Part shown: positions 1 to 54,360 of the stretch, piece after piece
Position numbering within the stretch: position 1 is the first letter of the stretch
How the letters are laid out: every line of letters starts with the position of its first letter
Origin: Macrostomum lignano
Taxonomy: Eukaryota
DNA length: 64,000 bases
Assembly: GCA_002269645.1 (NCBI GenBank)
Contig: NIVC01003341.1
Span: 39,274-103,273, forward strand
Direction: 5' to 3'
Made by a program: the position numbers and the translations under genes
The notes under the pieces: model-generated
Told to the model about the DNA's origin: nothing
What the model saw: only the letters and a program-made list of their open reading frames with translations
Database searches by the model: none

Positions 1-876
1 AGCCTCAGCTCAGTACCGGGTTGAGACACTTGGGAGGCAGTAGCCTCAGCTCAGTACCGGGTTGAGACACTTGGGAGGCAGTAGCCTCAGCTCAGTACCG
101 GTTTGAGACACTTGGGAGACAGTCGCCTCAGCTCAGTACCGGGTTGAGGCACTTGGGAGGCAAGGGCCTCAGCTAAATATCGGGTTGAGACACTTGGGGG
201 GAGGCAGTAGCCTCAGATCAGTACCGGGTTGAGACACTTGGGAGACAGTCGCCTCAGCTCAGTACCGGGTTGAGGCACTTGGGAGGCAAGGGCCTCAGCT
301 AAATATCGGGTTGAGACACTTGGGGGGAGGCAGTAGCCTCAGATCAGTACCGGGTTGAGACACTTGGGAGACAGTCGCCTCAGCTCAGTACCGGGTTGAG
401 GCACTTGGGAGGCAAGGGCCTCAGCTAAATATCGGGTTGAGACACTTGGGAGACAGTCGCCTCAGCTCAGTACCGGGTTGAGGCACTTGGGAGGCAAGGG
501 CCTCAGCTAAATATCGGGTTGAGACACTTGGGGGGAGGCAGTAGCCTCAGATCAGTACCGGGTTGAGGCACTTGGGAGGCAAGGGCCTCAGCTAAATATC
601 GGGTTGAGACACTTGGGGGAGGCAGTAGCCTCAGATCAGTACCGGGTTGAGACACTTGGGAGACAGTCGCCTCAGCTCAGTACCGGGTTGAGGCACTTGG
701 GAGGCAAGGGCCTCAGCTAAATATCGGGTTGAGACACTTGGGGGAGGCAGTAGCCTCAGATCAGTACCGGGTTGAGGCACTTGGGAGGCAAGGGCCTCAG
801 CTAAATATCGGGTTGAGACACTTGGGGGGAGGCAGTAGCCTCAGATCAGTACCGGGTTGAGACACTTGGGAGGCAG
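1..876. repeat. ~41-bp minisatellite (AGCCTCAGCTCAGTACCGGGTTGAGACACTTGGGAGGCAGT), runs off the window start
   Basis: About 21 tandem variant units are directly visible; two or three unit variants alternate. Confidence 0.95.
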
Positions 877-1749
877 CACCCTTGTCAAGTGAATTAAAAG
901 TTTGAATTCATGACAATTAGTTGCGCTTCAACAAATTTTAAAACCGAACTTTAAAACCAAACTGTAATACCATGCTGCAGTGACCACAGATGTTTATGAT
1001 AAGTTAAAAACGATTTTAACTACAAATTGCTTCGCGAAACCGGATAAGCCACTGAACTAAACAAGTTAGACAAACAACCTTAAATGCTAATAAAACAAGC
1101 TCTCTAATAAACTATCTATAGCTCGTAGTACGAAGCGCAAAGTCAGCTGACAAGACATGACAGCGAGTTAAAGAGTCGGTGAATTCTTATAAACTATCCG
1201 CAATCGAAATTTAAATCAAAAGTGAAAGTTCCATCTTAGGCAAGCCAGCATCATGCACACGAATTGCTGCTTTGGCTTGGATTTCTATGTAAAATCATGT
1301 GACAAAACACCGGAAAATTTACTGCCCACGTAACGGAGTTTTGTTTGAACTGACAGGTAGATCGAACTTCTGCTTTAGTTAACATTCAAAGTGAACATTC
1401 CTGGTGTGACTAACCCAAAATTATTGTTATAGTGCTAAAGTACGAGCAACTACTGAAAAATAGCTACTTTCCGGATTTATCATGCATCAATGGTAAACAA
1501 TAAATATTGTACAAGTCACTAATTTGTCTCGTACATGTAAATAGCCATCCGATGAAATCTTGTTAAATGCTTTTACTCGTATATTTCAAATTATACTCGT
1601 TTATTTTTGCGTTTTGCCTGAACTTCTTTCTCTATAGTGCGTTTTGCTTGTCTGTATTAATGCTTTTGATTAAAATATTCGGAAATATGTTTCGTCGAGC
1701 TTTTCTTCCAGTAAAAGTTTCAACTACCTTAGCCCCAGTAAGCGCTTCT

Positions 1750-4378
1750 AGTAGCTTCTCCTCAGTAGCTCCTCCTCAGTAGCTTCTCTCCAATAGCTTC
1801 TCCTCAGTAGCTTCTCCTCAGTAGCTTTTCCTCAGTAGCTAGCTTCTCTCCAATAGCTTCTCCTCAGTAGCTTCTCCTCAGTAGCTAGCTTCTCTCCAAT
1901 AGCTTCTCCTCAGTAGCTTCTCCTCAGTAGCTAGCTTCTCTCCAATAGCTTCTCCTCAATGGCTTCTCCTCAGTAGCTTCTCCTCAGTAGCTTCTCCTCA
2001 GTAGCTAGCTTCTCTCCAATAGCTTCTCCTCAGTAGCTAGCTTCTCTCCAATAGCTTCTCCTCAGTAGCTTCTCCTCAGTAGCTTCTCCTCATAGCTTCT
2101 CCTCAGTAGCTTCTCCTCATAGCTTCTCCTCATAGCTTCTCCCCAGTAGCTTCTCCCTAGTAGCTTCTCCTCAGTAGCTTCTCCTCAGTAGCTTCTCCTC
2201 AGTAGCTAGCTTCTCCTTAGTAGCTTCTCCTCAGTAGCTTCTCCTCTGTAGCTGCTCCCCAGTAGCTTCTCTCAAATAGATTCTCCCCAGTAGCTCCTCC
2301 TCAGTAGCTTCTCCTCAGTAGCTTCTCCCAGTAGCTTCTCCTCAGTAGCTTCTCCTCAGTAGCTAGCTTCTCTCCAATAGCTTCTCCTCAGTAGCTTCTC
2401 CTCAGTAGCTAGCTTCTCTCCAATAGCTTCTCCTCAATGGCTTCTCCTCAGTAGCTTCTCCTCAGTAGCTTCTCCTCAGTAGCTAGCTTCTCTCCAATAG
2501 CTTCTCCTCAGTAGCTAGCTTCTCTCCAATAGCTTCTCCTCAGTAGCTTCTCCTCAGTAGCTTCTCCTCATAGCTTCTCCTCAGTAGCTTCTCCTCATAG
2601 CTTCTCCTCATAGCTTCTCCCCAGTAGCTTCTCCCTAGTAGCTTCTCCTCAGTAGCTTCTCCCCAGTAGCTTCTCCCCAGTAGCTTCTCCCCAGTAGCTT
2701 CTCCTCATTAGCTTCTCCTCAGTAGCTTCTCCTCATAGCTTCTCCCCAGTAGCTTCTCCTCATTAGCTTCTCTTTAGTAGCTTCTCCTCAGTGCTCCCCA
2801 GTAGCTTCCCCTCAATGGTTTCTCCTCAGTAGCTTCTCCTCGTAGCTTCTCCTCGTAGCTTCTCCTCAGTAGCTTTTCCTCAGTAGCTTCTCCTCATAGC
2901 TTCTCCTCATAGCTTCTCCTCAGTAGCTTCTCCTCAGTAGCTTCTCCCCAGTAGCTTCTCCTCAGTAGCTTCTCCTCAGTAGCTAGCTTCTCTCCAATAG
3001 CTTCTCCTCAGTAGCTTCTCCTCAGTAGCTAGCTTCTCTCCAATAGCTTCTCCTCAATGGCTTCTCCTCAGTAGCTTCTCCTCAGTAGCTTCTCCTCAGT
3101 AGCTAGCTTCTCTCCAATAGCTTCTCCTCAGTAGCTAGCTTCTCTCCAATAGCTTCTCCTCAGTAGCTTCTCCTCAGTAGCTTCTCCTCATAGCTTCTCC
3201 TCAGTAGCTTCTCCTCATAGCTTCTCCTCATAGCTTCTCCCAGTAGCTTCTCCCTAGTAGCTTCTCCTCAGTAGCTTCTCCTCAGTAGCTTCTCCTCAGT
3301 AGCTAGCTTCTCCTTAGTAGCTTCTCCTCAGTAGCTTCTCCTCTGTAGCTGCTCCCCAGTAGCTTCTCTCAAATAGATTCTCCCCAGTAGCTCCTCCTCA
3401 GTAGCTTCTCCTCAGTAGCTTCTCCCCAGTAGCTTCTCCTCAGTAGCTTCTCCCCAGTAGCTTCTCCCCAGTAGCTTCTCCCCAGTAGCTTCTCCTCATT
3501 AGCTTCTCCTCAGTAGCTTCTCCTCATAGCTTCTCCCCAGTAGCTTCTCCTCATTAGCTTCTCTTTAGTAGCTTCTCCTCAGTGCTCCCCAGTAGCTTCC
3601 CCTCAATGGTTTCTCCTCAGTAGCTTCTCCTCGTAGCTTCTCCTCAGTAGCTTTTCCTCAGTAGCTTCTCCTCATAGCTTCTCCTTAGTAGCTTCTCCTC
3701 AGTAGCTTCTCCCCAGTAGCTTCTCCTCAGTAGCTTCTCCTCAGTAGCTAGCTTCTCTCCAATAGCTTCTCCTCAGTAGCTTCTCCCCAGTAGCTTCTCC
3801 TCAGTAGCTTCTCCTCATTAGCTTCTCCTCATTAGCTTCTCCTCAGTAGCTTCTCTCCAATAGCTTCTCCTCAGTAGCTTCTCCTCAGTAGCTTCTTCTC
3901 ATAGCTTCTCCTCAGTAGCTTCTCCTCATAGCTTCTTCTCATAGCTTCTCGCCAGTAGCTTCTCCCTAGTAGCTTCTCCTCAGTAGCTTCTCCTCGTAGC
4001 TTCTCCTCAGTAGCTTTTCCTCAGTAGCTTCTCCTCATAGCTTCTCCTCAGTAGCTTCTCCTCAGTAGCTTCTCCCCAGTAGCTTCTCCTCAGTAGCTTC
4101 TCCCCAGTAGCTTTTCCTCAATGGCTTCTCCTCAGTAGCTTCTCCTCAGTAGCTTCTCCTCATAGCTTCTCCTCATAGCTTCTCCCCAGTAGCTTCTCCT
4201 CATAGCTTCTCCTCATAGCTTCTCCTCAGTAGCTTCTCCTCATAGCTTCTCCCCAGTAGCTTCTCCTCATAGCTTCTCCTCATAGCTTCTCCCCAGTAGC
4301 TTCTCCCCAGTAGCTTCTCCCCAGTAGCTTCTCCCCAGTAGCTTCTCCTCAGTAGCTTCTTCTCAATAGCTTGCCCCC
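1750..4378. repeat. 14-bp satellite (TAGCTTCTCCTCAG)n, ~2.6 kb, with higher-order block duplications
   Basis: The tandem unit is visible throughout. Variant blocks such as AAATAGATTCTCCCC and CAATGGTTTCTCC recur at long spacing. Confidence 0.97.
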
Positions 4379-4444
4379 AGTGTAAGGCATTGCCCTCCTG
4401 AGAATAATTATTTTCGCAACCAAATTCCAGGAAACCAGACTCAC

Positions 4445-7400
4445 AGCCGCTACTGTCGCAGCTCGCCGGAGCATAATGGTGGCACAGCCAATCACGGAGG
4501 CCACGCTGAGCAAACCGCAGACTACAGTGGTGAACAGAACCAGACGGAGAGTATCGCACGTAGTTGGCGTGCTTTGGCTTGAGCTGTTTTCTGAAATTGT
4601 TGATTTTTATTCAGCGAAATTTAGGATTAGTGTTGGGTCTTGGTTTTTGCTTTGGGGGAGGCTTTAAGGTTTAGGGGCCGTCATACTAGGGTGCCAGGGA
4701 ATTAGGACAGGTTGTTAGGTCTCGCACGCACTAGTAGTATTACGGTTTCGAAGGCATAATGCTCCGAGTGACCTACGGGGAATCATCACTTGAAGTTCGA
4801 CTTAAAGCAACTGCAATTGATAACTTTGTTTAGAGACGCCGCGAGATCCCATAACAACCCCTTCAAGAACAATGGTCCGTTGGGCAAAATATAGACTGGA
4901 TATCAAAGTTCGCGCAGAATCGCATTGAACTTTGTCGTTCTCAGATAACAGTGTTACGACCTAGGGTGCCAGTCTAAGTCTATCAACTTCTCTCATCAAG
5001 GGGGTTGTAGCCTAGTGGTCAGAGCGTCGGACTCACGACTGAAAGGTCGGGGGGTTCGATTCTCGACCCACTTGGAACGATTGGCGTCCTTGCTTGCGCA
5101 AGACACTTAACTCTGCATTGCTTCAGTTCACCCAGCTGTAAAATGGGTGCCAGCATTAGCTGGGGTAATTGAGGGTGTGTGGCGACCCCCCAGTACTTGG
5201 ACTGAACAGCCGTACGCAGCCTTCAGATGCGCCGCGCAATAGCTGCGGCTGAGCTGTCGGTTGCACATCTGGCCCGATTGAGACAGGTGTACGAGATAAG
5301 CGAATATTACTATCATTATTATTATTATTTTATTACTTTATTTGAAGCATCAGGTCCGGTTTTGAAGTTTTGAAGAGTTGAAGCGGACTATCATCCAGTA
5401 GTCATTGATATACTTTTCATTAGTCCTTGAAACTTACCCTTCCCCGCTTCCATATGATTTATTACAGCATTATGGGCATTCTCTTCGCCTCCGATAGTTT
5501 TTATCGCTGTCACTTGAAATATTTTGTCGCCATTTTGCATCTGCAGGCCAACGCAGACGATTTGCATCGTGGCCGAGTAGCTTCTGTTGGACGTCGAGAT
5601 CGTTGTTACCTGCAAGATAGCCACCAGGGATGTTTGCCTTTTTAGATCATCTTAGAAAATGGATCTAGAATCAGAGCGTCTGCAAGGTTGACTCACATTG
5701 GTGAGACTGCAGTTCACGTTTGACATTTTAGGCCGACCTTCTTGAATCTGCACTGACCATTTCAGAGCATTGGATGCTGATTGTATTGTTAGGTTGCCTT
5801 TGTCTGAAAAATCAAGTGCTTTGAATGTACAGCTTTTGAAAAAAGCTGGAAATGCGACTGATTCACTGTTCCTATAGAAGTACGAGGCGTGGAGGCGTGG
5901 GGTGTACAAAGGACCAGGGGTGTCGCCATGGATTTTATGGTGGGAGGGACAAAGCCAAGAGCTCTACATGTACATGTACATGTACTAAATTCCTCTATGT
6001 ACACTATTTTCAGAATCAGTGCTTTCAGCGATCATTTTAGCGCCACAGACACTCACTTCAGCGCCGCAGTCACTCACTTTAGCGCCGCAGGCACCATTTT
6101 AGCGCCACAGGCACTCATTTTGGCGCCACAGGCACCACTTTTGCGCCGCAGGCACCATTTTAGCGCCACAAGGCACTCACTTTTGCGCCGCAGGCACCAT
6201 TTTAGCGCCACAAGGCACTCACTTTTGCGCCGCAGGCACTATTTTAGCGCCACAAGGCACTCACTTTTGCGCCGCAGGCACCATTTTAGCGCCACAAGGC
6301 ACTCATTTTAGCGCCGCAGGCACCATTTTAGCGCCACAGGCACTCATTTTGGCGCCGCAGGCACCATTTTAGCGCCACAGGCACTCATTTTGGCGCCACA
6401 GGCACTCATTTTGGCGCCGCAGGCACTCATTTTGGCGCCACAGGCACACTCATTTTGGCGCCGCAGGCACTATGTTTGTCGCCCTGAAGCAAAATTATTA
6501 ATTGCCATAACAAGTCAACAAAGGTGGAGTGGGGGGCAAAGCATTGGCATGACCCCGGTAGCTTTTACTGGGTCCCCCCTGCCCCCCCCCCTGTGGCGAC
6601 GCCGCTGCAAAGGACTATTTTCTTTTGGGAAACACTCGTTGAGATCCAACTTCGATCTAAGCCAAAGGTCGTTTTTTTAGTTTTGTGAACAATCTACCAA
6701 GAAAGCCTCTATGTTCGCTTCGCTCCTCGGGAAACAACACTTAAAAGAATTAATCATAGATTTTTTACACTTAATTTATCACTTATTCCCTGAATCCAAC
6801 AATCCAACAATGCGAAAATGCGACAATGCGAAGTCGACTCACAAAACACAGTTGGGGTAGTTTGGCTTAAAACTCGGTTGCTATGGAGATCTGATTGGTT
6901 GGCACGGCAGGCAATTTGCCAATTTCTGTGATTCATCATCCAATGCTTCACTTGCAGTTGATGCGTGCTGGTGTTACCGATGACCTGTAGTGTAGGAGCA
7001 TAAATGTATTTGTAGGAGCAATAGTACTTCAAATTTAAAACATGATGTAATAAAATGTTGTAAATGAATAATATCGTTAAAACGTACAGAAGTTCTATTG
7101 AGCTTGGACAGAACAGTCAAATCATTCTGGACAATTTCGCACGAGTGGCCAATTGCGCTGCAATTCGGCGATGTGAGCGTAACGTTCTCAATGCCGCCCT
7201 CAAGCCAGTAGGAACTCAAGCCGAAACTTATGCTTGCCTGACAGGGCTCTAGAAATTTTAGCAGGGAATTTCTTCGCTTCATCAATAAGACAAGCTGTAA
7301 ACAAGTTGGCATGTAATATGACAAAGTGTTACGCAATCTAGCTCACCAACTATAGTTGAAGGGCTAACATGGAACGTTCTGTACAGAGTAGCAATTGACC

Positions 7401-10285
7401 AACTCATTGTTGAGCGACAGTACAACTCGCCGCCAAGCTTTGATCGGTCAGCCTTCACCAGAAACTGGGAGATGGTGGTGTAGGCAGGAAAGCCCGTTCT
7501 GGACAGAGTCACTCGGACAGACTGGATCGGGCAAGGGGAGACGATATCATGACAAGTGAGACACTCAAAACGTTATATTTGTATTACAATTGGATTATAA
7601 CTCAGAGTAGTTTGCAGTCTTTAGGTTTGAAGACTTTAGGTCTGTAGTCTCTAAAGGTTTGTAGTCTTTAGGTTTGTAGTCTTTAGGTTTTTAGTCTTTA
7701 GGTTTGTAGTCTTTAGGTTTTTAGTCTTTAGGTTTGTATTCTTTAGGTTGTAGTCTTTAGGTTTGTATTCTTTAGGTTGTAGTCTTTAGGTTTGAATTCT
7801 TTAGGTTTGTAGTCTTTAGGTTTATATTCTTTAGGTTTGTATTCTTTAGGTTTGAATTCTTTAGGCTTGTATTCTTTAGGTTTGAATTCTTTAGGTTTGT
7901 AGTCTTTAGGTTTATATTCTTTAGGTTTGTATTCTTTAGGTTTGTATTCTTTAGGTTTGTATTCTTTAGGTTTGTATTCTTTAGGTTTGTATTCTTTAGG
8001 TTTGTATTCGTTAGGTTTGTAGTCTAGGTCCTACATTCCCAAAGGAATAGTTTTTGAATATCCCAACAGTTTCAAGAAAAGTTTTGATATAAATAATGCT
8101 CAAATGGATGTCTACATAATCTTCGTGAGTGGCGTTCGTAGCAATGCTCCACAAAAGTTTCCAGTCAAAGTCAACTTGAAACGAAAGACTTAAAAGGTCA
8201 CTTCCTTGGGCTTCCAGGAAATAAAGATTGTAAATAAAGATAAATAAAACATTAATTATTACCTCATTCACTTGGTCCAAGCGTTCCCCGGCACCATTAT
8301 TTCCATATCTAAAAACGCAAGAATGATTGGAAGGCGGATACTCCTCAACGGAGGTGAAGTTGACCAGCACAGACGAGTTGACCAGCCACTTCTTTGGCAC
8401 GCTCAGTGCCGTACGCTTGGCCACGACTGAAAATGGCCGAAAAATATCGTTTCTCTTCTATCACTGAATCGATTTTGAAATACAATGAACGAAAAATTCA
8501 AACTGACACTTCACGCCGATTGTCCTGACAATAGGACAGTTGCCACGATCCGGACTGGACAGGTTTCCATAGCAACAGATTAGCTCAGAACCTTGCCACC
8601 TCATCATTGGCTTGAGCTTAAACGAAAATCTTCCTGGAAAAGCCTGTGAATGGATAGATTTGATCGATCAACTGATTAGCTTTCAGAATGGCTTAATGAG
8701 TTCTAGTATCATCGAGTTCGACACACAATAGCTACCTGCTTGGACTCAACCGCAGGGACATCAGGGCGGTCAGGGTGGGTTTGGGTCAGTTTTGCTAAGC
8801 ATTGTCACCTCCAGGGAAAATCCGTAGCGGGAAATGCGCCTCTTTGGCGTCGCGAATGCAGAGCCCTTAATTTGTGAACCTCTGGCCCCAAACCGGGACA
8901 CCTCTCAGACGTTTTCACTACCCAAGGGCTACCGGGCAAACGACCATCCACCTCCTGCCTGGACTCTCCAGGGTCTCCGGATGCCCGGAACCCCTGCAGC
9001 TGAGTCTAGAAAGTCAAGTCACATAATAGCTACAAACACAGGTTCTTACCCGTTCTCTGACAACGACAACCCTCCTCAAATTCAATGGATTGCGACGAAC
9101 AAAGCATGAAACAGATAGACCTCTTGAACTTGAATCCATAAGATGGAAAGTTACAGTTTTTGCCTCCTTCAGTTTCAAAAGTGTCATTGTTGCATCGTGT
9201 GGGTCGAGTTTCAAGGTCGGTTTGTAGCCTGTGCGTTCGACCGGATCAAGATGAAATTTCAAAATAACATATTCAGTTTTGAAAAAGTTCAAATACGCTA
9301 GATTAAAAACCATTTCCTACCAGAAATATTGATTGCAGAAAAGCTGAGCTCATTTGAACTTGACAGAAGAATATAGGATATCGGTTTCTGAAAAAAAACA
9401 AGAAGGCAAACATGCTAAGAATCTATTCTAACGCATAAACAAACAGCCTCAAATATAAATAGTTATGACGTACCTGGTTAGAGCTACTAATCTGCATCCA
9501 AAATTCGCTACTGTTGAAGGCCTCCAAGCTGGCGCGGCACGGATCCTCCAGCTGCAGCTCCAGCGGGAGGCTCGAGGCTCCGACCGCTGACACGGGCGAG
9601 CCGACCGGAGCTGCTGTGTGCCACTGGTCATCTGCAACACGAGTGCTTGGCTGCTAGCTGGTCTCACACTGTCTCAGAGTGCTAATTAGATGCTAGCTGG
9701 TCTCACACTGTCTCAGAGTGCTAATTAGATGCTAGCTGGTCTCACACTGTCTCAGAGTGCTAATTAGATGCTAGCTGGTCTCACACTGTCTCAGAGTGCT
9801 AATTAGATGCTAGCTGGTCTCACACTGTCTCACACTGTGTCCCAGACTCCCTCTGCCTCATCATGCATCATGAGAATGAGTCGGTCAGCGTCACTCACCC
9901 CCGTCTCGCACGCTCACCGCCTCCAGCATCATCGGCTGCCTCAGCTGCATCACAAGCCACCGAGGCCCGGACCGCACAGCAGCAGGGAATCGGTTTGTCT
10001 CTGACTGCCGACTCTCCCACCAACAGCAGTGCGCACCGCTGGGTTGCCAGGTGCGCAGAACGTCAGCCCTGCTCAGCTTCACTGTCACTGTGAAGCGAAG
10101 ACTTCACAACTTGTACATATGAGCATCAGATACTGCATTTTTGCTAAGCTACGAGTACGAGTACAATGTGGCACAAATAGATACTCTTATTCGAAATTCT
10201 TACCGAGATTTTTAGAGCCAAAAGTGAGACCAGCTTTCCATACAGCCATTAATAACAAAATTGTTCCTAAACCTGTAGTCATCAT
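4445..10285 (-). CDS. Gene B: multi-exon type I membrane Ig-superfamily protein (signal peptide, possible discoidin-like domain, ~3 Ig-like domains, FN3-like domain, TM); last cytoplasmic exon unresolved
   Basis: Manual minus-strand exons: 10285-10204, 10087-9899, 9631-9474, 9387-9321, 9228-9050, 8643-8508, 8426-8263, 7521-7347, 7248-7088, 6984-6843, 5803-5697, 5609-5438, 4590-4445. All introns are GT-AG, phases join, and the total is 1878 nt with no stop. Signal peptide MMTTGLGTILLLMAVWKAGLTFG. Ig-like motifs FKLKPMMRWQGSELIC and SQFLVKADRSKLGGELYC. FN3-like VGLQMQNGDKIFQVTAIKTIG. TM LVLFTTVVCGLLSVASVIGCATIMLRR. Exon sizes and phases mirror gene A. If the 4444 donor is unused, the frame reads to a stop at 4349-4351. 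Confidence 0.8.
5000..5335 (+). mobile_element. tRNA-derived SINE, family 1, full length, in an intron of gene B
   Basis: Pol III A box (TAGCCTAGTGG) and B box (GGTTCGATTC). Central CAAGACACTTAAC...CACCCAGCTGTAAAATGGGT segment resembles conserved SINE core domains. (ATT)n tail. Second copy at 28760-29008. Confidence 0.85.
5915..6607. mobile_element. Non-autonomous hAT-like TIR element (MITE) with an internal ~21-bp GGCGCC tandem array
   Basis: TIRs CAGGGGTGTCGCCA / TGGCGACGCCGCTG (12/14 match). Perfect 8-bp TSD CAAAGGAC at 5907-5914 and 6608-6615. Array at ~6034-6470. Confidence 0.9.
7612..8025. repeat. 15-bp minisatellite (TTTAGGTTTGTATTC)n in gene B intron 7
   Basis: Tandem units are directly visible. 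Confidence 0.95.
9653..9830. repeat. 39-bp VNTR, ~4.5 copies, gene B intron 2
   Basis: Unit GCTAGCTGGTCTCACACTGTCTCAGAGTGCTAATTAGAT, identical to the array at 17425-18730. Confidence 0.95.
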
Positions 10286-10649
10286 CCCACTTAATTGGTG
10301 CAATAGATTTGTCGGGCTAAATTGTATAGGTGAAACTTGATAGTGCTTCATATATCATGCTGGACCAGTGCTTACCTCGAAAATACAGCGCTTAAAAGTG
10401 TAAAAGCCTTACCCACCCGATGTTTATTTTTCTGTGGCTAGAGGGTGTCCGGTCTCGTCACGTGTTCGTCAAGTCCGAACAGATGCCAACATCCTGACAG
10501 AGCGATATAGTTGCTATCTTTAGCTTATGTATAAGACTGTATTAAACGTAATGTAATGTACCCAGTTATTAAAAGTGGAATGTTGCCAGTTAATTAATAA
10601 GTTTAGTTGGCATGCGCAAGGAAATCATACTTCTTTGTGGCCTTATCAG

Positions 10650-11325
10650 TGTGGATCAGGGATGAATCGGTTTGGGTCAAGGGATGAATCAGTGTGGGTC
10701 AAGGGATGAATCAGTTTGGGTCAGGGATGAATCAGTTTGGGTCAAGGGATGAATCGGTTTGGGTCAAGGGATGAATCAGTGTGGGTCAAGGGATGAATCA
10801 GTTTGGGTCAAGGGATGAATCAGTGTGGATCAGGGATGAATCGGTTTGGGTCAAGGGATGAATCAGTGTGGGTCAAGGGATGAATCAGTTTGGGTCAAGG
10901 GATGAATCAGTGTGGGTCAGGGATGAATCAGTGTGGGTCAGGGATGAATCAGTGTGGGTCAAGGGATTAATCAGTGTGGGTCAAGGGATGAATCAGTGTG
11001 GGTCAAGGATGACTCAGTGTGGGTCAGGGATGAAACAGTTTGGGGTCAGGGATGACTCAGTGTGGGTCAGGGATGAAACAGTTTTGAGTCAGGGATAAAT
11101 TAGTTTTGGTCAGGGATGAATCAGTGTGGGTCAGGGATGAATCAGTGTGGGTCAGGGATGAATCAGTGTGGGTCAAGGATGACTCAGTGTGGGTCAGGGA
11201 TGAATCAGTGTGGGTCAAGGATGACTCAGTGTGGGTCAGGGATGAATCAGTTTTGAGTCAGGGATGAATTAGTTTTGGTCAGGGATGAATCAGTGTGGGT
11301 CAAGGATTAATCAGTGTGGGTCAGG
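10650..11325. repeat. 21-22-bp minisatellite (GGGTCAAGGGATGAATCAGTGT)n between genes A and B
   Basis: Tandem units are directly visible. Confidence 0.95.
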
Positions 11326-11575
11326 GATAGAAGCAGTGTAGAGTTAGTTGCTATGCAATAAAAGAAAAGGCCTTCAATCCATAATGATTATCTTCATTAT
11401 ATATTCTGTAATCTGTAGATAATGGAGATGGCACTCATAAAAAGAAGGTTTGAATTCGGACACCATGCTTTTCTGAGTAGTCTGCAGTAGAATTTTATAC
11501 GTTTACTTTGTCGGCCATATGCGTTTTCGCTTTCAAACTTTTCAATCGAGTGAGATTGCGGTTCTCTAAATCAGA

Positions 11576-19231
<7,656 letters not shown>

Positions 19232-19662
19232 TTGCCTTCAGTATGCCAGTAGCTGTGGGCAAGGATTAGCGAATTCGATATTTTTCTATTCAGCCAGAAT
19301 TGTTCACGACAAAGATTTTAAACATGCATGTGGAACTTTGTAAGTAAATAGTTTTTTTTCATAAATATTAACCCCGAAGTTTGAAAAATTCTGTACTTCG
19401 TTGCGCGCTATAGATTTACCATTTCCAGTCTTCGCCGTCGAACTGTTAAATTTATGAACTGCACTAGTCAACAGGTACGTTTGGTTTGCTTATTAAAAAC
19501 CTCTTTACTTGCTTCATCATTTACATGTAGCTTCTGTAAGTTATTTCGAAATTTGCAGCATTATTTTTATTATATTTAATTGCAAATTTTGATGCGACCT
19601 TCTTTTTTAACGAAATGCCTGCAAGAAGTTTGCAGTTATTTTTGGCTCACGAGATGTTCGAT

Positions 19663-20930
19663 CAGAGGCGTCGCAAGCGGGGGAAAGCTGTGGGGGACAT
19701 GCAAATCCCCCCCTCCACCCCACCTTGTGACCCGATATGGAAAGCAATAAGTTTGCTTTAGGGTGCCAAAATATAGCGCCTGCGGCGCCAAAATGAGTTC
19801 CAGCGGCGCCAAGATGAGTGTCCGTCTGCGGCGCCTAAATGAGTGTCCGTCTAGAGCGCCTAAATGAGTGTCTGTCTGGGGCGCCTAAATGAGTGCCAGC
19901 GGCGCCAAAATGAGTGTCCGTCTGGGGCGCCTAAATGAGTGTCTGTCTGGGGCGCCTAAATGAGAGCCAGCCGCGCCAAAATGCGTGTCTGTCTGGGGCG
20001 CCTAAATGAGTGTCTGTCTGGGGCGCCTAAATGAGTGTCTGTCTGGGGCGCCTAAATGAGTGTCTGTCTGGGGCGCCTAAATGAGTCCCAGCGGCGCCAA
20101 GATGAGTGTCCGTTTGCGGCGCCAAAATGAGTGCCAGCGGCGCCAAAATGAGTGTCTGTCTGCGGCGCCAAAATAAGTGTCCGTCTGCGGCGCCAAAATG
20201 AGTGCCAGCGGCGCCAAAATGAGTGTCTGTCTGAGGCGCCTAAATGAGTTCCAGTGGCGCCAAAATGAGTGTCGGTCTGCGGCGCCTAAATGATTGTCTG
20301 TCTGCGGCGCGAAAATGATTGTCCGTCTGCGGCGCCAAAATAAGTGTCCGTCTGCGGCGCCAAAATAAGTGTCCGTCTGCGGCGCCAAAATGAGTGCCAG
20401 CGGCGCCAAAATGAGTGCCAGCGGCGCCAAAATGAGTGTCTGTCTAAGGCGCCTAAATGAGTTCCAGTGGCGCCAAAATGAGTGTCCGTCTGCGGCGCCA
20501 AAATGATTGTCCGTCTGCGGCGCCAAAATAAGTGTCCGTCTGCGGCGCCAAAATAAGTGTCCGTCTGCGGCGCCAAAATGAGTGCCAGCGGCGCCAAAAT
20601 GAGTGCCAGCGGCGCCAAAATGAGTGTCTGTCTAAGGCGCCTAAATGAGTTCCAGTGGCGCCAAAATGAGTGTCCGTCTGCGGCGCCAAAATGATTGTCC
20701 GTCTGCGGCGCCAAAATAAGTGTCCGTCTGCGGCGCCAAAATGATTGTCCGTCTGCGGCTCCAAAATGATTGTCCGTCTGCGGCGCCAAAATAAGTCTGC
20801 GGCGCCAAAATAAGTGCTAAATCTCAAAGCCTGGTTCTCGAAATAATGTAAGAATCTATACTCATGTAGTTCGTAGAATTCTGACTTTCCCCCCCCCCCC
20901 ACTATAAAATCCATGGCGACACGGCCCCTG
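19663..20930. mobile_element. Second, inverted and larger copy of the satellite-carrying hAT-like MITE, upstream of gene A
   Basis: Ends CAGAGGCGTCGCA... and ...CCATGGCGACACGGCCCCTG. Imperfect 8-bp flanks TGTTCGAT/TGGTTGAT. GGCGCCAAAATGAG array at ~19770-20815 is homologous to 6034-6470. Confidence 0.8.
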
Positions 20931-21189
20931 TGGTTGATAAAAAATTATCATTGCAAAAAAATTGCAGGGGCAGCTGTCAAAAATTAAGGGCATCGATCCG
21001 TTTCACTTGACGGTTGAATAGAGTTGAATGGTTGCATGGGTGCTAGGGGGGCAACCCATTTCTAAAAATATACCGGTAGTTGACATTTGAAAGAAGTAAT
21101 TAATCATTCGAAAAGATAAGTGAGGTCCATATATTTCTATACGATCGCCAACCAATGTTTGAAGTTAGATAACTTTGGTTTCTGAGGGA

Positions 21190-22995
21190 GCCAAGCACAG
21201 CCAAGAAGGAGACAAGTCGGCCGCATCTTCAAAACCAGATTCGGGTCGCCACCTTCAATGCCCGCACTCTCAGTCAGACATGGAGACTGCAGGAGCTGAC
21301 AAGGCTGGCGGCCGACCTCAACATCTCCATCCTGGCAGTTCAAGGACATCGGCGGCAGACTGTGGATCTGGGCCTAATCTGGCAATTCAAGGCTGCCCCA
21401 GCCACTCCCCAGGGAATTGGAGGCATCGGCTTCCTGCTGTCGCCCGTCGCATCCTGAGCGCTGCTGGACATCAGGTTCCCACCCGAGCGCCTGGGACACG
21501 CCTCCTTTGCCGGAAAAGACAGGCGGCTTCACGTCATCTGCGTCTATTCTCCAACGGCCCCCCCCCGGACCAGCGAAGATCCGTCGGAGACAGAAGCCCT
21601 TTACGACACTTCGGGCTGCATGCTTGATTCCATCCCTGCTCGTGACTGTCATTGTTGCTGGGTGACTTCTGGTGACTTCATAAGCTGTGGCATCCCCAAT
21701 GCCAACTCACCTTTTCTGTCCAGTTTTATCCAGGCCAGAGATTTGATGACTGTCAATGTCACCATGCGACAGCGCTTCAGCAAGTTTCAAAATTTCTCTG
21801 GCCCCAACGGACGAACCACTCGGCTAGACTGGATTCTTTGCCCAACTGCCCTGAGGTCCAGGGTGCGCAGAGTCCTCAACATCCGCCCCGACTGCGTTCA
21901 ATCTGATGACCGCCTGGTGGCATGCGACTTCGATCAGCACTAGCAAAAGCTACGGCCTGCGCCACCTCACCCGCTCTGGGCAACCCGGACACGCGGCTGG
22001 CCTTCCTACGCAAGTTGCTTGCCGCTACTCTTGTTCCAGCCGAGTACTTCGAGTCTTCATCACGCCGTCGAGGATGCTGCAGCGCTTCTCCCACGGAGAC
22101 AGGCAAACCATCCAAAGCCCCTTTGGGACCGCGATCTCATCATCTCCCAGGCAAGGCGGCATGTGCAGAGCACTGCTGCACTCCACGGCCATGACAGCGA
22201 CCAGGCCAGTGCTGCCATGGACGAGCTGCAGCTCATCTACGCCCAGCGGACTGAAACCTTCATCGAAGAGGCTGTGAGCGAAATCCAACTCGCTACTGAC
22301 AACTGCCGCCATAGTGCTGCCTGGAGGGCCATCAACCAGCTGACTGGCAGGAAGCCCAGGCCCAACACCATCGTCGGCACTGATTCCACCGAGCACCGCA
22401 AGGCCCTGCTGGCCACCCACTACCGCGAGGTGCTCAACGCGCCCGCTCCAACTGCGCCTCTCCAACTGACCATACGAGCTGATGCCGCCGCTAGGGTGGA
22501 CGCCATCCCTCCCAGCGGTCCTCAAGCTGGCCGAGCTCACCCCAATCATTACCAGCCTGCTGAAAAAGCACTGCAGCCTTGGAGGCAACGAGGCTCCTCA
22601 GCAATGGCACACCTCCAATATTGTCTCCATCTCCACCGATCGCTGCTGAGATACGCGCTGGGCGTGCATTATCCGGAGCGCCTGTCGACTAACGCTCTGA
22701 TGGCCCGCGCTGGAACTCCGCCCCCCTGAGCGCTATCCTGCGACGGCGCCGTCAGATGCTGCTGGGCCACTGCCTACGGACCCTGGGTCGCTGTGCGCCC
22801 GTCCCTGGCCCTGGCCATGCTGCACGGGCCGACCGAGCAAAATTGCGCCGCGGCCAGGCCCGCACTGCCAAATCTATAAGAGCTATAACGGACTGCTCAT
22901 CGCGCTGACCTGCAGGCGCTTGCGCTGACCCCTCAGGCTGCTGCTGCCTGCCCCTCCAGCCTGTTCTCTCTCCTCTGCGTCTTAAAAAAAAATAT
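21190..22995 (+). mobile_element. Degenerate non-LTR retrotransposon (RTE-like): AP endonuclease remnant, RT core deleted
   Basis: Broken frame reads IRVATFNARTL...ISILAVQ...GIGGIGFLLSP...HVICVYSPTA...RLDWIL...SDDRLVACDF, an APE endonuclease motif set. The linker then reaches PQQWHTSNIVSI, joined directly to C-terminal HRSLLRYALG...RRRRQMLLGHCLR. There are stops and frameshifts and an A/TA-rich 3' end. Confidence 0.85.
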
Positions 22996-25319
22996 ATATA
23001 TACGCGCGTGAGGCCTGAGGATTTTTAATTGTGAAGCCTAAAACGCCCCGAATAGGGTGTAGCAATTGAATTATTCTTAGATCGTTGAGATTTGAAATGG
23101 CTGTTAATAAATATCATTATGCATCACATGTACATGTACTTTCCTGATGATCGAGAAAGCCGCTGTAAATGACTAGAAATTTGGTGAGGGAGCCTGTGCA
23201 ACATTCCGACGTCCGTCGTCAACTTACCCGACGTCGATGGATGTCTCTAGCAAATATCTCTTTTTACATTGCGTCGACGGATAAACGACGTTATAGGTCG
23301 GCCAAACGTCGTAAATTGAAAATCATTTTAAAGTACCTTTTTAGCAGCGAAGTCATATGTTGGACGTCAAATTAATAAGTCGGCCGGCGTCATCGACGTT
23401 GGATTGCTCTACGGGGGTAGATGTGGGGGGGGGGTTCAGAACCAACAGGAGGGAGAAGGTGGGCGCGCTTGGTTTGGTAAAAAAACTCGCTTGGTCTTGG
23501 CCTGTACAATCTTTCGGGGTCTCAATTCAAGGGCGGTCTCGATCCGGTTGTTGTGCCTCTGGCTATCACATCTACAATGTAGTTAGTAAAATTTCTGTAA
23601 AATAGATATAAACTCTTTATAAATACAGTTCAACGGAGGAAAATTTACAGTTATAGTTATTAAAAAGCTTACTGTCAGTCTGTTCAAAAATCGTTATTAA
23701 TATTTTATTTTCCGTGGATGGTTGCAAATTATAAAATTCGATTTGCCGTTTTTCCGAGAAATAGATTTGTCTTGATTTGTGTTTTATTGTTATGTGCAGT
23801 TAACTTGTATCCAATCTCTGTCTGATTGTTAGTATCTGATTGTTAGTTTAAAATATAAAAGCAACCCTATAACTCTTAGTTATATGTAATTATTTCTCTT
23901 GCAGCTTATGTGAATGCCGAATATAATGCGCTTTGGTACAGTTTAGGTTTAATATGAATTATACAATTGCAAATTCAGATTTTGGTTGTTAAATATTTTT
24001 TGCCAAATTGAAAGAGTAAAAAGCATCATCAATGCAACATTATAATCTAAATCATTTTATTTATTCACATTCCCTATTTCTTTGTTACTTAGAACACTTT
24101 GAACTGATGTTAATAATAAAATAATGGAAGATATATAAGGACAAGATTTTATAATATGTAGACTTTCAAAAATAGGATTACTTTGTCTTTGTCCTTTGTT
24201 TTATATTGTTGGAATTGCTTTTTTATTATTCTTTATCTATTTCACATCAATTTCTACTCATATCTTGTATATATCAAATAATTATTTTTTAAGTTTATCT
24301 TAAAATTTTTATACACTAATTTGAAAGATCTGGTTATATACTATGATATCTTGACTTGGACAAGAAGAAAATATTTAGAAGCAATATTGCTTTATTGCAT
24401 TCACAAATTCTTTATATTTTCAGTTTATACAGTTTTATTTATAATGATTTAGTACCCACTGTTTATACTATAGAAATAGAAAAAGTTAAGAAGATAAATA
24501 AATTTTGGTTAATAGTAAAACTAAACTAAAACTAGTAAAACTAAATTTTATTTAGAGGTTATATAGGAATTGTACCTCTGATTTTATCATTTGTTTTTCT
24601 TATATGTATAACTATAATCAAAAAACAAATGATAAAAATAATACAAATGATAAAATATATATTCAACAAAAACAATATATAACAACTGTCATTGTTGTTT
24701 TTGTATATTTAATTTAATAATTTAATAAGAGTTTCTGCCCCAACAATTTAAAGTGTATAAACATTGTTTATCAATTTAATTTGGTACATATGTTTATACT
24801 ACTAATTTGCAATTGTTTTACCAATATATTTATTAATATTAGTCTTGAATTTTTTTAAATAATGTGTAAAACATATGGATTTAGATTGACTACCTTGCAT
24901 TAACATATACAAGTTATAAATATGATAGCCAAGCTTGCTTAAGACATATCATAGAAAAAATATTTATATATAAATATATATATATATATATAAGTTAGGC
25001 AGTAGTCCATTCCTATTTTCAGCACATTTTTGTTGCTATTAGTAGAATGATATAATCATCTTACCTTTAGAGGTATTAGACCTTTGACCATTGTCAGTAA
25101 AATTAAAACTAAGCCATATTAAAAGATAACAATTATCAGAAAACTTTATCAGTATCTCATCACTCAAAATATTAACCGCCAGCCTCAAGGCATTTTCCCC
25201 ACCACCACATGAGTCTGTCAATGCCGGCACTGATGCCACTCTTTGTTGTGGCTGCCATTCCTTCGCGATAAGCCCCATTGACTTCCTCCTTGCTGCTAAA
25301 ACGTCGGCCTCACATTGTC

Positions 25320-26520
25320 TCCTTGATCCTAAGGAAGAGGAAAAGTCGCACAGGCTGAGATCTGGCAAATAAGGTGGGTGTGGAAGAATTTCCCCGCCCC
25401 ATGAGGCTTCAATCACCAATTTCTTGCGATGTGGAGCAGCGTTGTCTTTTGGTTTTTTGTGCAAATGGGTGCGAATAGCATCCTGGTCTTAAAAATTGCA
25501 CCCTGAAATTTGACTCAGGGTGCGAGAAGCGCACCAGAATTTTTTGCAAGGATGTGATGCTGATTTCACAATTTAGTGTTATGGGCGTCTTAAGTCCATA
25601 ACTTCGTATTCTTAGAATTAGCCAGCTGAGTGAGCTGAGCTGCTGAGCTGAGGCTGAGGGGAAAATTATAAGGAAATCAAACAATTAAGTTAAGCGTTTG
25701 GAATTTGGATCATCATTGGATGGTTTGGATGGACAGAAACTTTGAAACACACTATTAGTGTTAGACCAGTTTTTGTCTGCAGCAGTGCAGCGCATCCTGG
25801 TCTTGAAAATCGCACCCTGAAATCTAGCACAGGGTGCAAAATCGCACCCAAGTTATGGACGAAAAAAGCCCAGGTTGTCTTGCAGCAGGATTGGGCCCTG
25901 GGCGTGCAAGCTCGGCCTTCTGTCGCGAATGGCACTTTGCATCTTGCGCAGCACTTGCAGATCATAGTCACCATTGACTGTCTGGCTGGCAGGAACAGCC
26001 TGATCGAAGATGATGTCCTCGCGATCAAAGAAAGTCACATGCATGATTTCCAGCTGAGCAATGCTCCCCGCAGCCTTCACTGGCCTTGGAGAGCCAGGCC
26101 GGCACCAAGATGCGCTCTGCCGCTTCAGTTCAGCCTCCCGCGAGTGAGCCCAAGTCTCATCACAAGCCACGATTCTCTGAAGAAACTGAAGCCCCTCGCG
26201 CCTGTGTCTTTGCAGATGAGCTGCTCTGAGAGTTGTGCGGCAGACCTTCTGCTCCTCTGACAAGATGTGAGGCACCCACCACGCGCAAATCTTCCTGACT
26301 CCAAGATCTTCAGTAAGCATCTCATGGATTATCATGAGACACGCCAGTAGACTCAGCCAGCTGACGACTGAACAGGGCCTTCCACTTCGAGGTTCGTCAT
26401 GAACGTCCTCCTTGCCGTCAAGAACACCTGCCATCCAGCGACGTGACGTCCAGTGTCATGACGGGCAAGAGTCTCATGCCATGGCTCGATGCATGATGGC
26501 GTGTGTCTCTGTTGGAGACA
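25320..26520 (-). mobile_element. Decayed mariner (Tc1/mariner) transposase, interrupted by an insertion
   Basis: Motifs DEPRSGRP, WVPHIL, IVACDETW, QDN|AAPH and HPPYLPDLSLCDF (YSPDLAP-like). Internal deletions and frameshifts are present. No TIRs were confidently found. Confidence 0.9.
25448..25873. mobile_element. ~425-bp non-autonomous insertion nested in the mariner, at the second catalytic Asp region
   Basis: Flanked by a 7-bp duplication GTTGTCT (25441-25447 and 25874-25880). Internal CACCCTGAAAT/GGGTGCGA repeats. Removing it restores QDNAAPH. Confidence 0.7.
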
Positions 26521-26880
26521 GCCCAAGCAAGGCGTGAAACTTGATACTGGTTCGTTTGTCTTCTTTAGAGAAGCTTTTTTTGCAAAACGGAGGTGTTCAT
26601 AATAAGACTTGTAAATTTTCTGCTGTAAAGCTAGGTTTCTAGATTTCAAGCCAAGTTTTTTGTAACAGGCACTTTATATACCAGGCAGTGGCCTGGGTTT
26701 AGCCGCATTTCGTTACGTAACTTACAAATATATATATTGGTCAATAAGCAAAACTTTTCTGACAGCCCTCTCTCATATTCATAAAAGTGCCTCAAAAATC
26801 GATGACTGATTAAAATGAGTTCAACAGTTTTCACATTTTGCAAATATGTTATAGCAAACTGATTGAATTTCAGCTAAGCA

Positions 26881-28538
26881 ATGGCATCTGCAGTGGTACG
26901 CTGTGTTGGAAAGCTCAACTCCAATCGCACAGCCCTGTTTTTGTGCGACATGCAAGAGAAATTTCGAAAAACAATCACTCACTTTCCTGCCATTGTTGAC
27001 ACTTCTTCTCGGATGCTGCGAGCCTGTCAGATAATGAAGATGCCAGTCTTTGTCACTGAGCAGTATCCAAAAGGTGATTGTGGCATTGATTCACATTTCT
27101 GACATTGGAGTTATCTATATGCAGTCTTTCTCCCTTCTCGATGACTCAGCAGGCATCTCTACCCCCTACTCACCTACTCAATGACTCAGCAGGCATCTCT
27201 ACCCCCTACTCACCTACTCAATGACTCAGCAGGCATCTCTACCCCCTACTCACCTACTCAATGACTCAGCAGGCATCTCTACCCCCTACTTACCTACTCA
27301 ATGACTCAGCAGGCATCTCTACCCCCAACTCACCACTCAGCAGGCATCTCTACCCCCCAACTCACCTACTCAATAACTCAGCAGGCATCTCTACCTCCCA
27401 ACTCACCTACTCAATGACTCAGCAGGCATCTCTACCCCCTACTCACCTACTCAATGACTCAGCAGGCATCTCTACCCTGATGGCATTCCAGGTCTCAGTC
27501 ATACAGTTCCTGAACTCGGCGACCTCTCAGGAGTCACCGTTATAGACAAGACCCAGTTTTCAATGTGTGTCAATGCCGTCATGTCTGCCCTACCGTCCGA
27601 AATTGACTCGGTTCTGCTGTGCGGCATCGAAGCTCACGCCTGCGTTCAGCAAACAAGTCTGGACCTGCTCGAGAAGAATTTTCAGGTGCACGTGATTGTT
27701 GATGCTGTTAGTTCCAGGAATCCGGTTGACAGGTGAGGACAGAGCCTTGTCAGTAGTTTTTAAATAAATATTTTCAATTGTTGCTATGTTTAAATTTAAG
27801 TTTGGTCAGTTTAAAAATCTACATCCCAGAGTTTCAGGCTGAACTTTCTCAAGAATTTTCATGTTGAGTCACTGCCAGATTCTCATGTTGAGTCACTGTC
27901 AGATTCTCATGTTGAGTCACTGCCAGATTCTCATGTTGAGTCACTGTCAGATCCTCATGTTGAGTCACTGCCAGATCCTCATGTTGAGTCACTGTCAGAT
28001 CCTCATGTTGAGTCACTGTCAGATTCTCATGTTGAGTCACTGTCAGATTCTCATGTTAGATCACACTGCCAGATCTTCATGTTAGATCACACTGCCAGAT
28101 CCTCATGTTAGATCACACTGCCAGATCTTCATGTTAGATCACACTGCCAGATCCTCATGTTAGATCACACTGCCAGATCTTCATGTTAGATCACACTGCC
28201 AGATTCTCATGTTGAGTCACTGTCAGTCTCCCAGATCCTTAGGTTGATTCAACCCCCCCCCCTTTTGAGTACCTCAACCAGAATTAATCGTGAGGTAAAT
28301 CAATAACGTGGCTCTCATGCATACTTTTGTCATTAATCCCCGATTCAGAATGTACGCCCTGGACCGGATGAAGTCGGCAGGGTGCTGGCTGACCACATCG
28401 GAGTCGGCAGTCTTGGCTCTGCTTCGCGACGCCTCGCACCCGCACTTCAAAGAGGTGCAGAAAATTATCTGGGAGCCGTCGCTTGACTCCGGCCTGCTGC
28501 AGCCCGGCGGGCGCGAACCAAGCGGTGGGAAACTCTGA
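26881..28538 (+). CDS. ISOC2: Isochorismatase domain-containing protein (ISOC1/ISOC2 family), 3 exons, 207 aa
   Basis: Exons 26881-27073, 27492-27732 and 28349-28538 are GT-AG and in phase (624 nt). Motifs [45 protein letters not shown] and [24 protein letters not shown] are typical of the family. ISOC1 versus ISOC2 was not tested. Confidence 0.93.
27141..27478. repeat. 40-bp minisatellite in ISOC intron 1
   Basis: Unit ATGACTCAGCAGGCATCTCTACCCCCTACTCACCTACTCA. Confidence 0.95.
27855..28225. repeat. 24-bp minisatellite in ISOC intron 2
   Basis: Unit TCTCATGTTGAGTCACTGTCAGAT with a second variant (GTTAGATCACACTGCC). Confidence 0.95.
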
Positions 28539-28759
28539 GCAATTCTGAGCAATTAGCAGATCAGATCAGCCTTGATTGCTGACTTTGACCAGCACCAAGA
28601 TCCGTCTGTAGTCGAAGGATAAAAAGTTACTGTAGTTTTATTGAAATGAAAATTTATTTGAAGTTTTAATTTTGCCGCGAAATTCATGAGCAAGATAAGG
28701 ATTTTTCACTAATTTGATTGTTGGTTCAGTTTAGTTACTACAGATAAACAAAAGTTGAT

Positions 28760-29008
28760 TACACCTGCCCTAATTGGGCCAGATGTGCAACCGACAGCTC
28801 AGCCGCAGCTATTGCGCGACGCATCTGAAGGCTGCGTACGGCTGTTCAGTCCAAGGACTGGGGGTCGCCACTCACCCTCAATTACCCCAGCTAATGCTGG
28901 CACCCATTTTACAGCTGGGTGAACTGAAGCAATGCAGAGTTAAGTGTCTTGCTCAAGGACACAAATTGTTCCGAGTGGGTCGAGAATCGAACCCCCGACC
29001 TACAACCC
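28760..29008 (-). mobile_element. SINE family 1, second copy, with ~35 bp deleted from the tRNA head (A box lost)
   Basis: The reverse complement matches 5001-5290 closely but joins GGGTTGTAG directly to GTCGGGGGTTCGATTC. Confidence 0.85.
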
Positions 29009-29569
29009 TAGGTGAGAAAAACAAACAAAAGTAAAAATTTATTATACCTATCGACATTTCATTAGTTTGGAAATTGTTTAAAGAAACCCGAAAAATTCTA
29101 TCTTGCAAATGCATTTATAGAGCGAAAAATTATGACTTCAAATAAAAATTAAGTATGATTTACAAAGCAAATAGTCGCTGACAAGCCAAGCCCATCAATT
29201 CTTTTGGATTTGGTTTCTGTTTTGATTTTTTTATTATGTATTAAAGTTTTCTATGCAAAAAAATCTACTTTGTCACTTGTGTTTTAGTAGCCCCTAATTA
29301 TTTTAACAAACCATTTAGCGATAGTATTTAAAATCTATAGAGTTTAATAAACGATGAGATAAATTAACTGTCAAATTTTATTTACTGATTTGTTTAATTA
29401 AGCAGAAACAATAATTGTTCTCGAGTTTTGAATCTTGATAACTGTAGCAAGTGTTGAGAATATCATGTATTTAATGTATTAAAATGTTAAATTCTCATAG
29501 GCTGCGGTTTGCGATAGGCTTGCACTTGAGCAAACCGGCTTTTGTGCCCAAGCACGCTCCTTCTGTGCG

Positions 29570-53789: not shown

Positions 53790-54300
53790 GTGAGATTATC
53801 GGGGTCTCCTATTCCCAGATAAGATTATCGGGCTCTCTATTTCCAGGTGATATTATCGGGGTCTCCTATTCCCAGGTGAGATTATCGGGGTCTCCTATTC
53901 CCAGGTGAGATTATCGGGATCTCCTATTCCCAGGTGAGATTATCGGGGTCTCCTATTCCCAGGTGAGATTATCGGGGTCTCCTATTCCCAGGTGAGATTA
54001 TCGGGGTCTCCTATTCCCAGGTGAGATTATCGGGGTCTCCTATTCCCAGGTGAGATTATCGGGGTCTCCTATTCCCAGATAAGATTATCGGGCTCTCTAT
54101 TTCCAGGTGAGATTATCGGGGTCTCCTATTCCCAGATGAAACTATTGGAGTCTACTCCCAGGTGAGATTATCAGGGTCTCATTCCCAGATAAGATTATCG
54201 GGCTCTCTATTCTTAGGTGAGATTATCGGGGTCTCCTATTCCCAGATCAGACTATCAAGGTCTCCTTGATGAGACTATTGGGCTGTACTCACAGGTGAGA
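53790..54300. repeat. 29-bp minisatellite (GAGATTATCGGGGTCTCCTATTCCCAGGT)n
   Basis: Directly visible. Most units contain CCCAG|GTGAGA. Confidence 0.95.
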
Positions 54301-54360
54301 AGTGTTTTAAATTTAAATATCCAATAATTCGCAGATATTTTAATTTCATCCTTCTGCCAG

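Follow-up and report, generated by a model that had tools for sequence, protein, structure and literature searches.

A near-uniform N-terminal cassette with a hypervariable intronic minisatellite in a family of immunoglobulin-like membrane proteins of Macrostomum lignano

Two tandem genes of the window

We analysed 64,000 nucleotides (nt) of the genome of the flatworm Macrostomum lignano (contig NIVC01003341.1:39,274-103,273, forward strand), referred to as the window. On its minus strand lie two genes, A and B, that encode predicted membrane proteins, are elsewhere only about 25% alike, and share a nearly identical cassette consisting of exon 2, intron 2 with its minisatellite, and the beginning of exon 3. 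Positions refer to the window unless another locus is named. Five further loci (L001 to L005, L001 being NIVC01001776.1) were taken from the Mlig_3_7 PacBio assembly GCA_002269645.1, and copies of the cassette were sought with probes from the two arms of gene A; the resulting set comprises the window and L001 to L004.

Gene models were built manually from splice sites, intron phases, and the protein similarity between A and B. Gene A (12437-19231) has 11 exons (19231-19132, 18992-18804, 17403-17249, 17161-17095, 16979-16804, 16286-16127, 16075-15879, 14622-14442, 13282-13116, 12918-12765, and 12675-12437) and an open frame of 594 amino acids (aa), with all introns GT-AG. Its product begins with a signal peptide and a head module encoded by exons 2-4, followed by three more modules with phase-1 introns at their boundaries, a transmembrane (TM) helix, and a 19-aa tail. 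Gene B (4445-10285) has 13 exons within the window (10285-10204, 10087-9899, 9631-9474, 9387-9321, 9228-9050, 8643-8508, 8426-8263, 7521-7347, 7248-7088, 6984-6843, 5803-5697, 5609-5438, and 4590-4445), also with GT-AG introns throughout, and is open through the TM exon (626 aa); the exon for its cytoplasmic tail was not found within the window. A truncation of gene B by a TAA at the junction of exon 10 and the TM exon was considered and rejected, as two more exons intervene. The tails of the two types differ, those of B-type proteins including YYEDLDEYSQI and YVNY. Splice sites, phases, and the junction of exons 2 and 3 (VRDW followed by DGQW) are concordant with annotated M. lignano proteins. 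The gene B product is identical at 578 of 626 positions to that of its near-orthologue BOX15_Mlig016317g1 (P0020), i.e. 92% overall and about 94% in the cassette, which is thus not more conserved than the rest.

The first ten exons of A and B have equal phases and similar lengths. Amino acid identity is 18% in exon 1, 92% in exon 2, 69% in exon 3, 41% in exon 4, and 19% to 31% in exons 5 to 10. Because of these shared phases and the colinear protein similarity of 18% to 41% outside the shared tract, A and B are, as judged from sequence, genuine and very old tandem paralogues, as a preliminary description of the window had assumed.

The shared tract and its edges

Comparison of the two genes by blastn and global alignment, in gene orientation, recovered the near-identical tract that the preliminary description had placed at about 9520-10078 in B and 17300-18982 in A. 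The gene A copy of the cassette (17299-18992) extends from exon 2 (18992-18804) through intron 2, which holds a variable number tandem repeat (VNTR), to nt 105 of exon 3 (segment 17403-17299). The gene B copy (9527-10087) has the same parts, with exon 2 at 10087-9899, a short VNTR in intron 2, and the exon 3 segment at 9631-9527. No third copy is present in the window. Between A 18981-17299 and B 10076-9527 (minus strand), the alignable parts are 96% to 98% identical. Blastn of positions 1-10400 against 11401-19400 gave a single type of similarity (B 9505-10090 with A 17277-18995, about 97%), and no nucleotide homology between the A and B regions was detected beyond the tract.

Both edges are sharp, and lie a few codons into exon 2 and within exon 3 as first described. 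The last 100 nt of intron 1 are unalignable between A and B (52% identity) and nt 1-11 of exon 2 match at 8 of 11 positions; from nt 12 to nt 189, 175 of 178 positions are identical (A 18981-18804, B 10076-9899). In intron 2, 66 of 68 positions agree in the 5' unique part, the sole difference being one 2-nt indel, and all 23 agree in the 3' unique part. Identity continues through nt 105 of exon 3 (101/105; A 17403-17299, B 9631-9527). The following 30 nt form a transition zone (17269-17298 in A, 9497-9526 in B) with 21 of 30 positions identical, and farther on identity is about 55%. Gene B encodes LEAFNSSEFW in this zone, where B-type copies of Mlig_3_7 have the family consensus WEAFGSS. The longest exact run common to A and B is 181 nt. 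The exons of the tract hold seven substitutions, again in agreement with the earlier count; six are nonsynonymous (R/C, I/L, W/G, G/D, A/T, and Q/L) and one is synonymous (Pro).

Thirteen copies of the cassette

The two genes are adjacent and in the same orientation, and their cassettes differ by only seven substitutions over 368 aligned columns, as would be expected if a single recent conversion between A and B had made one chimeric receptor, the event proposed in the preliminary description. However, 11 more copies are present on four other contigs, with the same block and the same edges. In total there are 13 (window, 2; L001, 6; L002, 2; L003, 1; L004, 2), representing at least eight gene lineages. 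The gene A cassette is 94% to 99% identical to the other 12 copies in the 5' arm and 91% to 97% identical in the 3' arm. Different flanks and VNTR lengths exclude that the other copies are duplicates of A or B.

In a multiple alignment, the match begins at the junction of intron 1 and exon 2 and ends about 105 to 135 nt into exon 3 in every copy. A profile across the copies has step-like edges, with nucleotide diversity (pi) of 0.015 to 0.056 inside the block and 0.39 to 0.64 outside. At the 5' edge, a single 40-nt bin takes pi to 0.39 to 0.58; at the 3' edge, the values go from 0.04 through 0.14 in the transition zone to 0.47 to 0.64. By part, exon 2 and the 5' unique sequence of intron 2 each have a pi of 0.029, the 3' unique sequence of this intron has 0, and the exon 3 segment 0.042. 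The intron matches as closely as the exons do, for which ectopic conversion is the only reasonable explanation. Conversion as such, with its sharp edges, therefore stands as first suggested; a private, recent transfer between A and B does not, because the same block and edges occur in all 13 copies.

Relationships among the copies also disagree with a single A/B transfer, which we regard as very unlikely. Over the 368 columns, pairs differ at 3 to 21 positions. Naming copies by locus and position in kb (W_A and W_B being genes A and B of the window), W_A is nearer to L2_22k (5 differences) and L4_9k (6), and W_B to L1_56k (4), than the two are to each other (7), and all changes of A and of B from the family consensus are private. 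Within the block, copies with common flanks are not closer than unrelated ones (W_B and L2_10k, 8 differences; L1_89k and L2_22k, 7; L4_2k and L4_9k, 10), and 13 of 36 pairs of informative sites fail the four-gamete test. The end point of the block varies even among B-type copies whose flanks are 93% to 96% identical (GGC versus AAC): the 3' end reads CTTCGGCAG in L1_10k and L2_10k, CTTCAACAG in W_B, and CTTGAACGG in L1_20k. These differing end points are best explained by separate conversion events.

Against the consensus, the copies have 47 nonsynonymous and 20 synonymous changes on 220 and 74 sites, respectively, giving an omega of about 0.8. The 6:1 excess of nonsynonymous changes between A and B was considered as a sign of positive selection and rejected: since omega across the family is near neutral, this ratio is unremarkable.

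An assembly artefact would be another way to make the regions alike, through a collapsed or chimeric consensus. The M. lignano genome is neopolyploid and repeat-rich (PMC10733133), VNTRs are hard to assemble, and many UniProt gene models break precisely at intron 2. Yet A and B are distinguished by seven substitutions, a 2-nt indel, and 29 VNTR units, and the 11 copies on other contigs of GCA_002269645.1 have private variants and VNTR lengths of their own. The same block thus recurs across contigs of the PacBio assembly, which answers the concern raised at the outset, and we give an artefact almost no credence as the source of the similarity.

Three of the copies are decaying. L1_38k (L001 38080-38700) lacks most of its exon 3 arm and has altered codons by the splice donor of exon 2, L1_56k (L001 55682-55931) has a 5-nt deletion in exon 2, and L1_20k (L001 19852-21552) has nine nonsynonymous changes.

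The family, its proteins, and a diverged outgroup gene

The family that includes genes A and B is restricted to Macrostomum. Its members are type I membrane proteins with immunoglobulin (Ig)-like ectodomains, in which a signal peptide is followed by an N-terminal head, several Ig-like domains in a chain, a TM helix, and a tail that varies. Protein searches matched M. lignano alone. A profile search of 1.84 billion representative proteins identified 34 family representatives, and all cluster members of the nine that were looked up are from M. lignano. In about 35 predicted proteins, the stretch encoded by the cassette, about 98 residues of the head, is 90% to 100% identical, and the remainder is 27% to 41% identical to A. 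This is the opposite of the domain shuffling that the preliminary description had proposed, as the membrane-distal head is constant and the rest of the protein is variable.

Family proteins are labelled 'Ig-like domain-containing' in UniRef. Pfam searches with exons 2 and 3, full-length A and B, and eight other members gave nothing above threshold (best match C2-set_2, E 0.04, under its cut-off), and a sequence-profile search of the PDB gave no match. In the AlphaFold2 (AF2) model of P0019, residues 280-525 form beta-sandwich modules with a predicted local distance difference test (pLDDT) score of 80 to 86, and Foldseek matched the model to ICAM-5 D1-D4 (E 1.3e-11), SYG-2, nectins, SIRP-gamma, and CD22. 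Because of these matches, the body of the protein, as distinct from the head, is identified from the model as a chain of Ig-like domains. The head has a pLDDT of only 25 to 43 in two AF2 models. Its motif RWLVMQL..AVSV resembles at first sight a possible discoidin or galactose-binding-like domain, for which Pfam gave no match.

The public gene models are disrupted at the cassette. Eleven predicted UniRef family proteins stop at the end of exon 2, before the VNTR intron, and 14 of the 24 models found in a second protein search start at or just past the start of exon 3. The broken models P0001-P0011, P0013-P0017, P0021, P0022, and P0025 end or begin at the codons of the boundary between exons 2 and 3, and in P0005 and P0038 the TM tail of one gene is fused to the leader of the next. 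We take the UniRef protein set of M. lignano to come from the older ML2 assembly; exact look-up of the short UniRef models P0001 and P0002 gave no contigs.

An outgroup gene, BOX15_Mlig026732g2 (P0063), encodes a homologous head with 38% identity to that of the cassette. Its intron 2 occupies the same position and is a plain one of 517 bp without a VNTR; exons 1 and 2 are fused, so that intron 1 is absent (L005 6001-6300). Since this gene has a homologous head with an intron at the same place, the head itself is ancestral, and only in one subfamily is it uniform. In the homogenised subfamily, the 5' edge of the cassette coincides exactly with intron 1, which was either gained there or lost in the outgroup.

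Purifying selection on the protein could in principle keep the head alike without exchange of DNA, as the product of the cassette is membrane-distal in a surface protein and has the high identity among predicted proteins described above. The unique intron sequence is conserved like the exons, however, other introns of these genes are unalignable, omega is about 0.8, and the outgroup head is merely 38% identical. An ultraconserved domain, which had been named as the finding that could overturn the conversion reading, is therefore not what the data indicate. Purifying selection is insufficient as the cause, and as an explanation of the block we consider it exceedingly improbable, although it may still operate across the whole family.

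The outgroup also bears on the possibility that the cassette was recently inserted into each gene as a mobile or copied unit, for instance an exon-carrying element or a segmental copy. The identical step-like edges in all copies would fit such a unit. So would an orphan 39-bp repeat array with about 30 nt of 5' flank in the intron of another gene (L003 4510-5578). Against insertion, the outgroup has a homologous head whose intron lies at the same position, neither the reading frame nor the phases are interrupted, weak homology persists for 30 to 60 nt beyond the 3' edge and reaches exon 4 (41% aa identity), and the 3' edge varies between copies. No terminal repeats or target duplications were seen, although no systematic search was made for them. 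Recent insertion is accordingly a poor candidate, to which we attach little probability.

The 39-bp minisatellite of intron 2

Minisatellites are very abundant across the window. Homologous introns of A and B carry arrays with unrelated units, for example in intron 7 (a 19-bp unit in A, 15107-15842, and a 15-bp unit in B, 7610-8025); other intron arrays have 20-, 21-, and 14-bp units (13368-14355, 6032-6471, and 1750-4372), the 14-bp array in intron 13 of gene B spanning 2.6 kb. Only the intron 2 array is common to both paralogues. According to Tandem Repeats Finder (TRF) and a unit map, this array has 33.6 units with a 99% match in gene A (17424-18735) and 4.6 identical units in gene B (9652-9832), all of one and the same 39-bp unit. 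The gene A array has stops in all six frames. Across the 13 copies, array length ranges from 65 to 1313 bp (1 to 34 units), and every array has its own map of variant units. The arrays of W_A and L1_20k are both 1312 bp long (17424-18735 and L001 20106-21417), which is probably coincidence; that they represent one allele was rejected, as their variant-unit maps differ.

Among the features of minisatellite recombination hotspots, hypervariable length and private variant units are present here, and conversion polarity is absent. Folding of the unit as single-stranded DNA was no better than that of shuffled sequences (z 0.06 to 0.34), and an Rfam scan of the cassette gave no match. The orphan array in L003 is 1.07 kb long, with its flank corresponding to the 5' intron flank of the cassette; it lies in an intron of a different gene upstream of P0023, without cassette exons.

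A fusion of A and B at a syntenic locus

Positions 19074-29551 of the window are syntenic with L001 10158-1, at 96% to 99.8% identity and with the same isochorismatase gene upstream. At NIVC01001776.1 10001-17000, exon 1, intron 1, and the start of exon 2 of gene A lead through a 13-unit VNTR into exon 3 and the whole body of gene B. Compared with window 973-19568, this locus is without the A body, the intergenic region, and exons 1 and 2 of B, so that about 8 kb between the two cassettes of the window are missing. Intron 1 of the fusion matches A at 143 of 150 positions, and the sequence after the tract matches B at 187 of 198. The annotated protein P0019 has exactly this structure of an A-type 5' part and a B-type body, and the A body (12200-17250) had no match in L001 to L004. 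Unequal crossover inside the cassette would give such a product. M. lignano is a neopolyploid (PMC10733133, PMC5704211), which is why the window and L001 may represent haplotypes or subgenome copies. Farther downstream in L001 lies another B-type copy in two pieces, with the 5' part at 19.5-22.7 kb, the 3' part at 80-86 kb, and three other cassettes between them.

A more speculative reading is that the VNTR intron acts like an immunoglobulin switch region, with deletional recombination between cassettes of the same orientation bringing about programmed switching of the body. One promoter, leader, and constant head would then be re-joined to a different receptor body, in the germline at a high rate or even somatically. 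All that speaks for it is a single fusion haplotype and where the repeat lies, and we think it most improbable.

Probable concerted evolution of part of a gene

Three features of concerted evolution are found in this subfamily, namely a block of high identity within diverged flanks (96% to 99% in DNA, among paralogues with 19% to 41% protein identity elsewhere and unalignable introns), noncoding sequence as similar as coding sequence, and mosaic, discordant relationships among copies. They point, with high probability in our view, to family-wide concerted evolution by interlocus gene conversion that is confined to a constant N-terminal cassette. The difference in end points and the existence of a fusion speak for more than one event. 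We infer conversion as the process, heterology as what sets the edges, and a common partner as what keeps the head uniform. Interlocus conversion, with occasional crossover, would recur among all copies of the cassette. Tracts would be limited on the 5' side by the unrelated intron 1 and on the 3' side by diverged coding sequence, and because this heterology would block them, the edges would become step-like and reinforce themselves over time. Intron 2 would be carried along between two homologous arms.

Several points weigh against this reading. The comparisons are within one species, M. lignano, and offer no contrast between species and gene lineages, and no donor or direction is assignable among the copies. 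Some failures of the four-gamete test may reflect recurrent mutation, and the L001 fusion could be an assembly collapse. Most variants are singletons, so that one past homogenisation followed by decay, which fits almost as well, is hard to separate from ongoing exchange. Finally, pi is flat inside the block on both arms; as there is no gradient of identity away from the VNTR, an initiation site is not indicated and the link between minisatellite and conversion is positional only.

Comparison with other systems

In the vertebrate paired receptors Siglec-5/14, Siglec-11/16, and CEACAM1/3, conversion keeps the ligand-binding exons and introns near-identical (PMC4042635, PMC5701461, PMC2832619). 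The flatworm genes resemble these tandem clusters, which in vertebrates consist of Ig-superfamily genes, in that conversion is limited to the 5' exons for the membrane-distal domain, including the introns between them, and has sharp edges, beyond which stalk, TM segment, and tail have diverged. They differ in lineage and in scale, since the flatworm block is common to a subfamily (at least 13 copies, at least eight lineages, and several contigs) rather than to a pair, and in having a hypervariable minisatellite amid the block. In addition, the flatworm head, with no Pfam match and a pLDDT of 25 to 43, is not assignable to an Ig V-set domain. Paired receptors have opposing tails, with an immunoreceptor tyrosine-based inhibitory motif (ITIM) in one and a charged TM residue or adaptor in the other; the flatworm proteins have a common head and tails that differ, with no canonical pairing of ITIM and an activation motif (ITAM) seen among them.

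Gene conversion restricted to one region was reportedly also described by Noonan et al. in 2004 for the variable exons of clustered protocadherins. There too, one segment of a tandem array is homogenised within a species as others diversify; unlike the flatworm cassette, however, the homogenised part, which belongs to one large exon without an intron or VNTR, is membrane-proximal or cytoplasmic. The human minisatellites MS32 and MS31A are said, from the work of Jeffreys and co-workers, to be associated with recombination hotspots. They resemble the flatworm array as length-variable minisatellites at a site of conversion and crossover, but their instability is polar and driven by a flanking hotspot, whereas no identity gradient accompanies the flatworm array.

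Interlocus conversion is a known kind of process, here in a new family confined to a flatworm lineage. Full-text searches gave no description of such a homogenised head cassette in Macrostomum. With its step edges, included intron and minisatellite, many copies, unconverted outgroup, and crossover product, the system would be a clean natural case of part-gene concerted evolution, and it makes testable both what delimits interlocus conversion and whether such conversion is promoted by an intronic minisatellite. A constant head on differing bodies and tails suggests one common partner with many readouts, in a lineage-restricted Ig-like surface family of a flatworm that serves as a model for regeneration and sexual selection.

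Other features of the window

A second tandem pair of open reading frames (ORFs) lies on the minus strand at 30281-31141 and 34029-35033; the two are 91.9% identical over 675 nt (30416-31087 versus 34161-34835), and each has a hydrophobic, TM-like stretch and no Pfam match. Pfam identified a mariner-type Transposase_1 fragment in a long minus-strand ORF (25856-26455) and, on the plus strand, an isochorismatase-domain exon syntenic with L001 (27458-27733), DUF4615 in a long ORF (54273-54992), and an exon of an amiloride-sensitive sodium channel (ASC; 55877-56605). Long overlapping ORFs at 21169-22726 on the plus strand, two pieces of which had no Pfam match at E <= 0.01, look by eye like a putative remnant of a retrotransposon endonuclease and reverse transcriptase.

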